From assembly GCF_040938485.1 (NCBI RefSeq), contig NW_027271369.1, forward strand, positions 1,302,001 to 1,366,000: a stretch of 64,000 nt of DNA, written 5' to 3'. Shown here piece after piece: positions 20,580 through 38,500 of the stretch. Origin of the DNA: Diadema antillarum (taxonomy: Eukaryota). The notes under the pieces were generated by a model. It did no database searches, was not told where the DNA came from, and saw only the letters and a program-made list of their open reading frames with translations. The position numbers and the translations under genes are program-made. Each line of letters begins with the position of its first letter. Position 1 is the stretch's first letter.

Positions 20580-23500
20580 GTGTGGTATTTTGTCTCTTCT
20601 CTATCTCTGTCTCTCTTCGACTTCCTTTCTTTCTCTCTCAGTAAATATTTTCTCATATCTTTCTCTCTGTCACGTGTTTGCCTGCATGTGCCTCTTCATT
20701 GTCTCTGTTTGTTTTTTACTGCGACTGAGTCATGTTTTATCTTTTCTGCGCGATATGAAAGCATTCCGCAGGGGAAAAAAAGCTCCGTTTTATTGAAAGA
20801 TATATACTCCGGTTTTGATTTAGAAAAATTCAGATTCGTAATTTTGAGAAATCAAAATATCCCTCCGGGCATTGTTATGATAATCACTCCTTGCAGTAAC
20901 CGCTCTTCTGCTGAGTATGTTAGGCATTGTGTGTTCACATTGGTCTCTCTTTCCTCAAACTTTATAAATTATATACATCACGTGTGTGTGTGTGTATCTG
21001 TGTGCATCTGTCTCATTGTCTGTTATATATATCATGTGTGTGTGTGTATGTGTGTGCGTGTGTGTATATCTGTGTGTATCTGTGTCATTGTCTGCTTTGT
21101 ATTATAAAGTATACTCAATACCCCTTAACTGGAAAAGTATTGCATTTACACACATCATTTAAAATTCGATGAGGCATATGAATTGCAACCTTGTGAATGA
21201 TAAAGCAGGTTAGCATAAAGGTATTATTAAAGGTATTCATGCCTCAAAACTTAATGGTAATGGCTCATTTCGTCACGACTACATTGTTCCAAGTCAACGC
21301 CGTGTATTCTTTGATTAGGTGCGTAGGGGTATAACTGTAAGCATATCATGTACAGACAATCAGCAAACACGATCTTTCTTGTTTTTATACGAATTGGTTT
21401 ACAAAACATGTTTTGAACTCTGACACTCGATGTACCTGAGGAGCCCAACATGAAGAGTGAATCAAGCATTAAAACATTAAATCCGCAAAGAAATCTTGCG
21501 TGTAAAAGAAGGTGAGACAACACTTTCGTCAGTGAAACATAAAGAGAATAATGTGAAACATGGTTGATACAAACGTATTTGATTCAGAACAAATCATTCT
21601 CAAAAAGAAAAATAGGGAGCCTATGTTTCAAATGTATATCTCCACGTTGATAATTATGCCAACGAAATCACCCATTAAAATAATACATAATTACATGATG
21701 CAGACATTCAATCTTCATGAGTATACGGACGGCTATCATATATTCAGGACAGTTTATCCGCATATATGTCTTCAATGATTCATCTCCTAGGTCTTGAGGT
21801 GTTGGACACGTGCAATTCTGCCAAGGTATCTGTGGAGCAATCGATAGCATACCTATCGGAGCGAGCGACTCCAACAGCGTCCGGTCTGTCTTTGTGCGAC
21901 AGCGCCGCCTACCGTCCAGGTGAGCTCAAGCTGCACAGCCATTCAGAGGGCTGCCTTTAATCAATTCAAACTTGCAGGAACTTGCGGTTGAGCTGCATGA
22001 TTTTACACAGAAGATGAAATACGTATTAGTTCTTTATACCTGCGATGTGATGCCCGGCCCTAGAGTGCATTATTTTCATGGTAGGAACATATTTTGTTTC
22101 GCTGTGAAAGTTTACAAAATTCAATTTTGTCAAGCAAGTCCACACACAATTGAATCACACACGTCAAACACGTGTCCTACAGAGTATATTCTGGCAAACA
22201 TAATTATGAATAAATTGTGTATTCTAGAAACATAAGATTACAGATAGCAGTCTCACACTGCAACATAGTTTCAAACTTTGTTGGAAAGCGTACTCTTGTT
22301 GCCAACATGGTGAGTACGTGTTATTCTATGAAAACAAAACAACACAATAGACTGCACATTTCAATTTTCTGCCATATCCTTCCACCTTACCCCCATTTCA
22401 AGTTGTCATTGGTCAGCTGGAAAACGACGCTGGCCCTGCTGTGTCATCTCTCCTAACCGATGCCAGGGTGCCGGTCATCAGCTACGCCGCCACACTGACC
22501 GAACTGACCGCTAATCCAGAGTACCGCTTCTTCTCCCGTAACATACCATCAGATGACGACATCGCGCGGGTAGGAAGAACATGGTTGAAAAATTTAGCAT
22601 TACAAGTCTTCGTCTTCTCCATCACTCTTTTTTGTATAATACAGTACCTTTAAGTTGGAGGGTGCATCTCTAGTGCATTCCGTATTATGGTCTCCTCTCC
22701 TTCTCGTTCTCCCGTATCTACCTCCACGCCATGCCATTGTCTGTCCTATTTTTTTTCTGCCCGTATTTTTCTTCTTTGTTATTTTCTAGTCCGCCATATC
22801 ATAATATGCTTATGTCTCCGTGCATGTCTCATTACTTTTTTTCGTCGATTTTAGTTATTGCAATAATTTCGTTACTTTGAAAGCAACGTGAACAGCTGCC
22901 TTCAGTCAATTAGACGCTTACCCACTAATGTTAATATCCTCCACATATCTTATCGGGTAATTTTCTGTCTTTCCGGATATGAACAAAATTGCATTCCTCT
23001 GGGTGCTCGATTCTAATGTAAACAAGGTAGGGCCTATATTAGACGAAGAAGATTTTGAATATATAATATGATGCCACTATGTTGGGCAAATTTTGAGTTG
23101 AGAATAGATATTGGCATAAGCAAGTGGTCTCGTAAAATGCATCATCTCTCCATATGTTTCCAAGGCTATGGTGGACGTTCTCAAGCGGATGGGATGGACC
23201 TATGTGGCGGTGATTGCCTCAGATACCACCGACGGCAACGGGGCCGGAGAAACGTTTCGGGATGTTGCCGAGGCAAACGGCATATGCGTGTCCGTGTTTA
23301 ACGTCATCGCCGAGGGGACGACAGAATCAGGCGACTTCGACACTGCCTTGGCCGACATCGCTGCGAATAGCGATCTCAGAGTCGTGGTACTGTTTGTTTC
23401 GTCCGACCTTGCAAGAGGGCTATTCGATGCGGCCAGTCGGCTGCCTTCTGTCAACCTGCAATGGGTAAGTACCAACCATGTTATCTTTATCAAGTGTGCT

Positions 23501-35500: not shown

Positions 35501-38500
35501 ATAGGATATTTCTCTTTACGGAAGGGTGAAAGTTAGAGAAGACAGATATCAAATGTACTAACGACAAAAAGCTATGACTACACTAGAACATAAACGTCTG
35601 AAGACTTATTTTCTTTGTTTATATTTGAAATTATGAATAGGCAACATATTCTTCGATTACCACCACGGACGACGATCCGAGCAGTCTCCTGAGTGTAGCG
35701 GAGAGCAATAATCACAAAGCCAGGGCACTGACCGATCTCCTGCTTTACTACAACTGGAATCTAGTCGGTGTTGTGTACGACTCAAGTGATTTTCAACAAC
35801 GAGAACGTAAGTATATGTCACTATAACACGATTGACGTTTGCCACGAAACTTATATCGACAAATTCAATTGTACATGAGAACCAGAGACCTATTTCCGCT
35901 TATCTTAATGCCGTCTAGGTCTCAAGGTTTAGATATTGAATCAAATATTGATTATAGGTATAAAATCTTTCATATAGGCTTGGAGATTGCATAGAATCAT
36001 GAATGCAGATATGGAAAGTTTCGGTTGTAAAGCTCATCATCTCATTATGAATTTTCAGAAAACAGCATGACTTACTGATTCAAGGGAACAAGGCTTTGGC
36101 GATAATCATGTATACGCTACTACTAGTCCTAGTGACAGTGGTGTATTTATTGATACTTTAGCTGCAACAAGAAATTTACACAGCAAGAAGTCTCTAAGAG
36201 TAACTTGGAGTATCTTTATTCCCACATGTCACAAAAAGGTAACAAAAATAGAGAACGTCCATTATTGTTTAATGATGAAGATGTAAGTACAGGTCCTATC
36301 TTTAACAACAGATAAATAATATAAAGAGATAAACACGTTTTAAAAGATACTGCAAACCGTGGATTTCTTTAAGCTGCATTGATATTTGTGGGAGCAAATG
36401 GTTTGCATCCCAATTTTTTTGAGATATTGTAAAGACACCGATAGTCATTATGATGTTCGAGTTGGAGTTTGACTAGTTTGATAGACTTGAGATTAGTCTG
36501 AGTTGGGTTTTTTTTTTTTGTATCCGCGTGCTTCATTTTGTTCTTCCCTGTATAATCACTAAACAGGATATAATAGCAAAAAAAGCAGAAACACCATTTA
36601 TCTGTAAAATGTTTCACTGACTGGTATTTCAAACATACATTTGACATACGCCTTGAAATCTCAAAATATATTTTCTCTTCATGCTCATATACAAAACTTT
36701 ATAGCACTGATCATGATAGATTATAATACACGTATAACGATAGATCATATATCTCTCTGGTGGAGGTTGTGTATGTATCAGTCGATCTTGGTGATATCAA
36801 GAGAATATTTGTCACTTTTGTTCTCCTTCACAAATGCAGTCGCTTCAGCATTCGAGGACGCTGCCGACAACCAGGGCATTTACGTGGGCTTAGAGGTCGC
36901 TTTGACAACCGACAACATCCTGGCAGCACACCTAGCTTTCCAGAATAGTGAAAGCATCAATGTTGTTGTCGTCTTTGCAGACAAGCCTTGTCTAAATCCT
37001 TCCTAGATAGTGCTACCACAGATGGGTCAGAAGGTTCGCGCCGACTAACGTTTATCTTGGCTTTTCCAAGGAGGTTTTCGGCCGCCGAAATTACCTCGAA
37101 TTTTGCAGGTTCTCTTGCATTCTTCCAGCTTTCACCACCATCCAATTTTCAGCAGTACGTGACCACTCTGAGCGCTGAAGATGAGAATGCTAGCCCATGG
37201 TTCGTTGACTACATCGAGGACAAGTACGACTGCGACGCTGACGGAGACGCTGAGCGTCAATCTCCATGTCTAGGCTCAGAGAGAGCGTCGGTCACCGATA
37301 TAGAAAACTATGGCTCTGCGGCTTCCCTCGTCATTGATGCGGCTTACACTATCGCACGAGGGACGGACAACCTTTTACGCCAACTCTGTGGGACAACTAT
37401 TCGGGTTTCTGCACCGAGTTCCTGGAAGCTGAGACCCAGCATTGCGGAATGCTATTGCTGGTGTTCATTTATCGGTAGTGATGGAAAACTGTGAGATATG
37501 TTGACCAAGTTCGTGAGCCCTGTTTGAAATATGGAATGGACAGGAATCTGGGGGTAGCGTGGACTTTGCTGGGGTAAGGACTTCCAGTTTCTTATCTCCC
37601 ATAAATTCAATTTGATGATGTATTTCCAATGTAATCTTGTAGAGTCTGTGTGTATACCAGTTAAGTATCACGAAATCTGTTTGCTAGAAAGAAACAAAGT
37701 ATAACTGATTAATTATCTGAACGTCCATTGATTCAAATTTATCGAATTCATAATTTTTCGGGTGTCACTTTGCAGCGGTTTTAAATTGTGTAGAGGAGCA
37801 ATTTTAAAAAGACATGTGACGTTAATTTATTCTACATAAGAGATCGCAATCGGCCACCTAGGTCTGAAAAGTTTCATTTCCCCCTCTAATTTAGGTTGGT
37901 ACTTGGGAAAATCGGAGACATACAGCTGAGAGTGAATGAAATAGAGCTCTATACCGCTGCTTCCCTCCCTGGCCCAGCCGCTCACAATGTAGCGACTCCT
38001 TCATTCTGCCGACCAGCCTCTCCTTCACCACTGAACCATCCGGGACTAGGTCCTACGCCCGCACGCCGCTCGTACTATTCTGGTGTGGGATTCTATGTCT
38101 TGATCATCATCGCCGCGGTTGGAGCACTCATTGCAGTTTTCGTGGGTTTAGTCGTCATCGTCCGGTGGAACAACCCGCTGTTCGAGGCGTCTCCTCATTC
38201 CTCCACCTCACTCTCCTTCTCGGCATCCTACTCCTCTTCATCCTCGTCCCGCTCTACTACGCCCCCGCACTCACTGCGGTCTGTGGACTGCAGCGAGTGG
38301 TGACTGGTATCGCCTACGCCACCTGCTACAGTTCAGTCTTCCTCCTCGTAACCCGACTCTATCGCATCGGCGTCCGCGAGCGGCGGATCACCGGCAAGCG
38401 TGCCCCGATGATCAACAACGCGAGCCAAGCAATGCTCTTCGCGGTCTTATTCCTCATCGAGGTCGTGTTCCTCGTCCAGTGGCTCGTCCAGCAGCCTCCT

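Follow-up and report, generated by a model that had tools for sequence, protein, structure and literature searches.

To our knowledge, the activation models of class C GPCRs (G protein-coupled receptors) all assume one Venus flytrap (VFT) domain per subunit, which is placed on the seven-transmembrane (7TM) domain directly or through a cysteine-rich domain. The GABA-B receptor is a heterodimer, in which GB1 binds GABA and GB2 is non-binding but signals. In the metabotropic glutamate receptor mGluR1, residues S165, T188, D208, Y236, and D318 bind the α-carboxylate and the α-amine of glutamate (PMC2680970). In addition, Acher and Bertrand defined an eight-residue amino-acid signature (S165, S/T188, R203, D208, Q211, Y236, G237, and D/E318, mGluR1 numbering; PMC1764893), and the class C receptors for amino acids that were known by 2006 required it (PMC1764893, PMC2680970). 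The insect receptor DmXR (mtt), which is derived from the mGluRs, has kept the proximal site while two of its distal residues are altered, and it responds to L-canavanine and to no classical amino acid (PMC2695807). A recent survey listed only ANF plus NCD3G, ANF alone, and Cache plus EGF as metazoan architectures (PMC12716839), and our literature search on tandem or multiple VFT or ANF domains in class C receptors turned up no report on those of animals. Here, we describe a class C GPCR gene with four VFT domains in tandem (VFT1 to VFT4) in a 64,000-nucleotide stretch of Diadema antillarum DNA (the window; assembly GCF_040938485.1, contig NW_027271369.1, positions 1,302,001 to 1,366,000). Only the third of the four domains keeps the complete α-amino-acid signature, and VFT3 is probably the orthosteric site, for a ligand other than glutamate.

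To read the pocket, residues were numbered natively, with chain 9ii2_R for mGluR3 and with the chain index of 1EWK plus 32 for mGluR1. VFT3 could be aligned with the solved structures of mGluR3 (E = 2.6e-54) and mGluR1 (1EWK, E = 1.3e-49), and its C-terminal part was matched to mGluR structures in a separate alignment. We found that VFT3 has all eight residues of the signature and retains all five α-amino-acid contacts (table 1). Meanwhile, the glutamate-specific basic pair R78 and K409, which contacts the γ-carboxylate, is replaced by Leu and Glu. Placing K409 within an FD-x-x-GD motif proved wrong, and native numbering puts this residue at the start of the D-S-K helix. The original prediction had assigned the same VFT3 residues at the five contacts, R78, and K409, including the Glu at K409, and all of its assignments were right in the numbered alignment.

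VFT1, VFT2, and VFT4 were read by MAFFT and profile alignment, and then single exons were aligned directly to solved structures, including mGluR4, 1EWK, and mGluR3 for VFT1 and 1EWK for VFT2. VFT1 carries N, T, R, D, I, D, G, and H (R by hmmalign) at the eight signature positions (4/8), and it has Leu at R78 and Tyr at K409. VFT2 scores 3/8, with Asp at S165, Ser at T188, Asn at both D208 and D318, and a Tyr one residue off the Y236 column; it retains the R78 equivalent but without the proximal site, and K409 is replaced by Gly, with a Lys one residue earlier. VFT4 scores 0/8, with Asn or Gly at S165 (with a two-residue deletion), Ile at T188, Asn at D208, Phe at Y236, Leu or Phe at D318, Glu at R78, and Ser or Ala at K409, and shifting the register by one or two residues never restores the pattern. 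These results confirm what had been claimed before, namely that VFT1 lacks the equivalents of S165, Y236, and D318, that VFT2 has Asp at S165 and Asn at D208 and D318 but keeps R78 (all borne out by the 1EWK alignment), that the pocket of VFT4 is essentially gone (the structure alignment agrees), and that the canonical amino-acid pocket is found only in VFT3. Alignment to the mGluR structures, 1EWK included, revealed no intact pocket in VFT1, VFT2, or VFT4. Judged from these alignments, only VFT3 is predicted to fit binding of the α-amino-acid group in the manner known for this family.

To see whether this pattern is shared, we compared the gene with its relatives. The word-index protein search with the VFT3 exon gave single-exon fragments only, owing to its length window, and the exhaustive protein search gave many proteins of 1,800-2,900 residues with three to five VFT matches. 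These relatives are annotated only as "uncharacterized protein", and they come from Anneissia japonica (XP_033109263.1), Saccoglossus kowalevskii (XP_002735016.2), Branchiostoma floridae (XP_035691717.1), Tubulanus polymorphus (XP_074641006.1), Sinanodonta (KAL3856574.1), Octopus (XP_052832771.1), Argopecten, Babylonia, a scorpion, and a tick. The proteins of the crinoid Anneissia and the acorn worm Saccoglossus each include four ANF_receptor domains and one 7tm_3 domain (Pfam), and our gene model is colinear with both of them from the signal peptide to the 7TM. In the module tree, each module of the window clusters with the crinoid and acorn-worm module of the same number (Shimodaira-Hasegawa-like approximate likelihood ratio support 99). 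All eight signature residues occur in module 3 of the acorn worm, of three partial relatives (P0001-P0003), and of the crinoid, where E stands at D318, a residue that the signature permits; modules 1, 2, and 4 of the crinoid and the acorn worm score 2-5/8. Because the module-3-only pattern is kept in these orthologues, it is old and selected rather than a chance result. Two contigs of other organisms also show part of the same order: one (L001) has the end of VFT2, then VFT3, VFT4, and the 7TM, and the other (L002) has VFT3 and the start of VFT4. VFT3 is a single exon in these two contigs (L001 4787-6175; L002 606-1934) as well as in the window, and VFT1, VFT2, and VFT4 are split into three to six exons.

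Furthermore, VFT3 is the slowest-evolving module and is under stronger constraint than the others. Its branch in the tree is the shortest (0.62), the other modules have 1.13-1.54, and VFT4 has the longest (1.54). The listed exonic variants are mostly synonymous, and the ratio of synonymous to non-synonymous variants is 14:1 in VFT3 versus 3:4 in VFT4 (Fisher p = 0.02), although these counts rest on 40 listed positions of about 300 differences and are a rough measure.

The location of the single competent module also needs to be described. The original prediction had stated that sensing takes place in a module other than the one adjacent to the 7TM. This is right for the window and for the crinoid and acorn-worm orthologues, but it is not right for the nemertean, bivalve, and octopus relatives, in which several modules score 8/8, the membrane-proximal one included. 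The nemertean and mollusc members have five modules, and the octopus has three or four. Among the five-VFT proteins of Tubulanus, Sinanodonta, and Argopecten (P0022, P0024, and P0027), the full signature is found in two to four modules, with four modules at 8/8 in Tubulanus, and these relatives may be multi-ligand receptors. On the predicted pockets, the single, penultimate competent module is a trait of the ambulacrarian four-VFT orthologues and not of the whole family. As for the origin of the modules, the tree separated modules 1 and 2 from modules 3 and 4 (midpoint root only). An A-B-A-B duplication of a two-module unit was rejected, as it does not fit this topology and as the pairwise identities between modules are flat (20-25%). 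In addition, four Polypterus senegalus proteins named "CASR protein, partial" (P0016, P0017, P0018, and P0025) have 2,500-3,900 residues and match the VFT 6-10 times, often only in part. Rather than genuine tandem-VFT receptors, they look like adjacent OlfC/V2R-type genes fused by annotation. The tandem-VFT class C family is old and apparently undescribed in print, though it is present in public annotation; what would be new here is which module is predicted to be ligand-competent, and the conservation of that pattern.

The gene spans positions 20291-40831 of the window on the forward strand, with 19 exons, a coding sequence of 6,993 nt, and 2,330 amino acids ending at a terminal stop codon. 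The order is signal peptide, VFT1, VFT2, VFT3, VFT4, stalk, 7TM, and C-terminal tail. The gene model was made by chaining the open segments that match a VFT profile through GT-AG junctions, with seven read-supported single-base corrections and eight breaks written as X; one acceptor site was set by alignment to the crinoid and acorn-worm orthologues. All 18 exon junctions are GT-AG and in-frame. The profile, which was built from relatives, gave four consecutive series of matches (20354-24184, 25640-30438, 32846-34115, and 34572-37398), and each module spans from about profile position 3-19 to at least 383-447. Pfam ANF_receptor (PF01094) matched within the VFT pieces, and 7tm_3 (PF00003) matched after the fourth (E = 2e-18 and 1e-17), where seven hydrophobic segments occupy residues 1995-2261 of the model, C-terminal to the VFTs. 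Both the 7tm_3 domain and the extracellular VFT place the product in the class C GPCRs. However, it departs from the mGluR/CaSR/T1R subgroup, with four VFTs in one open frame instead of one and with NCD3G missing: the NCD3G cysteine-rich domain had no match at E <= 1 in the three inter-module linker exons, and the stalk before the first transmembrane helix holds a single Cys in the corrected reading and no cysteine-rich domain. How the first exon of VFT2 joins the second (window 25865-26368) is unsure, with about 17 residues in the model that are not in the orthologues, and a better canonical splice pair was sought for this junction and not found. The range given by the original prediction (22403-37573) opens only with the third VFT1 exon, at its first base; the VFT1 equivalents of Y74 and R78 (20516-20530) thus lie outside it. 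Two further features of the window are a run of N at 7725-7987 and, in the intron before VFT3, an (ATT/ATC)-rich microsatellite (31831-31910, period 12, 6.5 copies).

Table 1. Features of the receptor gene, pocket positions of VFT3 (mGluR1 numbering), and indel sites, in window coordinates.
Feature	Position	Strand	Content	Basis
VFT1 and Cys linker	20291-24805	+	Exons 20291-20579, 21791-21919, 22403-22569, 23165-23464, 23657-24208, 24659-24805	Hidden Markov model, Pfam ANF_receptor
VFT2 and linker	25625-31554	+	Exons 25625-25920, 26368-26707, 28620-28869, 29378-29551, 30164-30468, 31374-31554	
VFT3	32847-34112	+	One exon, 1,266 nt	Pfam ANF_receptor 9e-53, mGluR structure alignments
VFT3-VFT4 linker and VFT4	34440-37573	+	Exons 34440-34942, 35641-35806, 36840-37573	
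Stalk, 7TM, C-terminal tail	37895-40831	+	Exons 37895-38709, 39837-40058, 40686-40831	
VFT3 Y74 equivalent	32909-32911	+	Y	
VFT3 R78 equivalent	32921-32923	+	L	
VFT3 S165 equivalent	33134-33136	+	S (GDQTS)	
VFT3 S186 equivalent			G	Direct structure alignment
VFT3 T188 equivalent	33203-33205	+	S (YGAS)	
VFT3 D208 equivalent	33263-33265	+	D (VPSD)	
VFT3 Y236 equivalent	33347-33349	+	Y (NAYG)	
VFT3 D318 equivalent	33584-33586	+	D (GGDTW)	
VFT3 K409 equivalent	33849-33851	+	E (LESEVSY)	Aligned with mGluR3 K389 and mGluR1 K409
Read-supported indel sites	37389, 37463, 37908, 37977, 38058, 38173, 38497			Independent DNA contigs
Inferred indel sites	~33759, 33779, 34681, 36985, 37430, 37488, 37519, 38558			Frame and orthologues

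The structure models were compared with known receptors. The model of P0001, the closest complete relative of VFT3 with the same pocket residues, had a predicted local distance difference test score (pLDDT) of 92.5, and it superposed on the agonist-bound VFTs of mGluR1, mGluR3, and mGluR5 with template modelling (TM) scores of 0.90-0.92 at about 2.1 Å. In the AlphaFold model of modules 3 and 4 of the crinoid orthologue, both modules are well folded, module 4 with confidence, while the predicted TM score is 0.56 and the linker has pLDDT < 50. An intramolecular pseudo-dimer of VFT3 and VFT4 was considered and is unsupported, given this score, the low-confidence linker, and no contacts from the tool. 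Each inter-module linker (24740-24780, 31465-31500, and 34525-34560) carries a three-Cys motif, C-x-G-x-C-x-x-C, which is conserved in the crinoid and the acorn worm. In mGluRs, a disulfide joins lobe 2 and the cysteine-rich domain. By analogy, we speculate that the motif could anchor each linker on the lobe 2 before it. VFT4 is without the lobe-2 Cys and reads GIYVG where the other modules carry Cys.

On these grounds, we propose that VFT3 would be the orthosteric site and would close on a ligand with a free α-amino-acid group. The side chain of this ligand would differ from the carboxylate of glutamate, because both γ-carboxylate contacts are replaced (Leu and Glu) and one of them is now acidic. 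To reach the 7TM, the signal would then have to cross the degenerate VFT4 and the stalk, which has no cysteine-rich domain. Canonical binding of an amino acid would be impossible for VFT1, VFT2, and VFT4, which may act as a scaffold, as relays, or allosterically, or may bind other ligands; a structural or allosteric role fits their conservation as orthologous, well-folded modules. In such stacked clamshells, a VFT other than the membrane-proximal one would bind the amino-acid-like ligand, and the closing of that VFT would be passed on in cis via a ligand-blind VFT to the 7TM. This is a tentative idea that we hold to be rather doubtful, and we know of no GPCR with this kind of relay.

Before this reading is accepted, the state of the locus itself should be considered, as it could be a decaying pseudogene, or separate VFT genes wrongly joined, and then the pocket pattern would have no functional meaning. 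The window as given has about 15 frame changes without introns at 33.76-38.56 kb, and no run on record as RNA contains the stretch. However, the first 13 kb of the gene reads through unbroken, and the single-base indels are concentrated at 33759-38558. We compared contigs over 32800-38600 (5,801 letters) from two studies with the same species label (X1 and X2) and from one labelled as a related species (X7, 90-95% alike); none of the contigs appeared to be human. At all seven listed coding sites, the covering runs differ from the window by one base (X1 is without depth at 38173 and 38497), and after these seven changes were applied, the frame is uninterrupted from the stalk through the fourth transmembrane helix. 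The eight other breaks, which could not be read among the best-supported rows, are located at short one-base runs. For the two breaks inside VFT3, P0001 has a continuous frame of equal length and the same conserved Cys loop, and X7 shows exactly two gaps over the VFT3 exon; X2 shows 35 gaps over 32825-38600. None of the VFT3 pocket codons is hit by these indels. A 65-nt intron (33769-33833) bridging the frame change of VFT3 was ruled out, because the frame of the relatives is uninterrupted and of equal length and such an intron would remove the codons of the conserved Cys loop. Since the independent contigs, from two same-species data sets and one relative, carry the frame-restoring base at the listed sites they cover, the frameshifts at 33.7-38.6 kb are assembly indels and not gene decay. 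The predominance of synonymous changes among the listed variants also argues against a pseudogene. As for joined genes, there is no 7TM, stop codon, or signal peptide between the modules in the gene model, and both the in-frame junctions and the colinear single proteins predicted in Anneissia and Saccoglossus support a single transcript for all modules and the 7TM. Decay or a false join is therefore highly improbable. In addition, a small unlabelled run (X11, 27 million letters) gave contigs solely at 33291-33676 in the VFT3 exon and 37018-37247 in the VFT4 exon, which would fit RNA, yet without a splice joint.

If the gene is intact, VFT3 could still be a glutamate or aspartate site with distal contacts other than those of the mGluRs, as its proximal site and Y74 equivalent are intact and the mGluRs are its best match by sequence and fold. 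However, both γ-carboxylate residues are replaced, one of them by the acidic Glu, and the same two changes accompany the loss of the glutamate response in DmXR (PMC2695807), so that we regard a glutamate site as decidedly unlikely. The signature might also mark a co-agonist or structural site like the L-Trp site of CaSR, where the real signal (an ion, a peptide, or a surface ligand) acts on VFT3 or another module. In CaSR, activation by Ca2+ depends on the amino-acid-site residues S147, S170, Y218, and E297 (PMC8115157). Furthermore, the orthology of VFT1, VFT2, and VFT4 is conserved and crinoid module 4 folds well, which suggests that they were kept for some function. Nevertheless, nothing indicates a specific alternative ligand, and VFT4, by branch length and variant counts, evolves fastest. 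A co-agonist site is thus an unlikely explanation, but a better one than a glutamate site. An amino-acid-type, non-glutamate ligand at VFT3 is still the best reading. It should be noted that several points weigh against it. The signature is necessary in known receptors and is not proof of binding; the comparison of VFT1, VFT2, and VFT4 used only sequence alignments; the two-module model gives no support to a fixed VFT3-VFT4 packing able to relay closure; and the silence of the RNA runs counts here too. Moreover, the distal residues vary among the orthologues (L, H, or Q at R78; E, N, or Q at K409), and thus no single side-chain preference can be predicted. The acidic Glu at K409 would suit a basic side chain, yet this variation bars naming a ligand class. 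For the same reason, the part of the original prediction that called the ligand neutral or basic was a guess, while the part that called it a non-glutamate amino acid agrees with the best reading.

This family, which is conserved across echinoderms, hemichordates, molluscs, nemerteans, and chelicerates, places three to five VFTs in series. Identifying the module with the orthosteric-type site makes the odd architecture experimentally tractable, in particular the question of how the closing of a distal clamshell is transmitted to the 7TM. In addition, the lineages with one competent module and those with several offer a natural contrast. If the prediction is true, the several competent modules of the nemertean and mollusc relatives could let one receptor integrate several ligands.

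Among the known systems, VFT3 is closest to the VFT of mGluR1, mGluR3, and mGluR5 (1EWK, 2E4U), with E about 1e-54 in sequence and TM 0.9 in fold, and they share the five α-amino-acid contacts, the Y74 equivalent, and a 7TM of the 7tm_3 type. However, there are four VFTs here instead of one, NCD3G is absent, Leu and Glu replace R78 and K409, and a whole VFT (VFT4) separates VFT3 from the 7TM. DmXR resembles VFT3 in its conserved proximal site and its two altered distal glutamate contacts, but it has a single VFT and the usual mGluR architecture. Because DmXR answers no classical amino acid, caution is needed in naming a ligand from residues alone. The fish OlfC receptors, goldfish 5.24, GPRC6A, and CaSR likewise combine a conserved five- or eight-residue signature with a variable distal pocket (PMC1764893, PMC8115157), and CaSR has Ser (S170) at the T188 position, as VFT3 does; each of them has one VFT and a cysteine-rich domain. 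The bacterial sensor kinases BvgS and EvgS carry two periplasmic VFTs in series on one chain before the membrane (PMC4352136), but their VFTs are of an unrelated lineage (the bacterial binding-protein type), their output is a histidine kinase, and they are not GPCRs. Finally, the GABA-B receptor also combines a ligand-competent VFT with a degenerate one and lacks a cysteine-rich domain ahead of its 7TM. However, its VFTs stand side by side on two subunits, whereas those described here are arranged in series in one chain.

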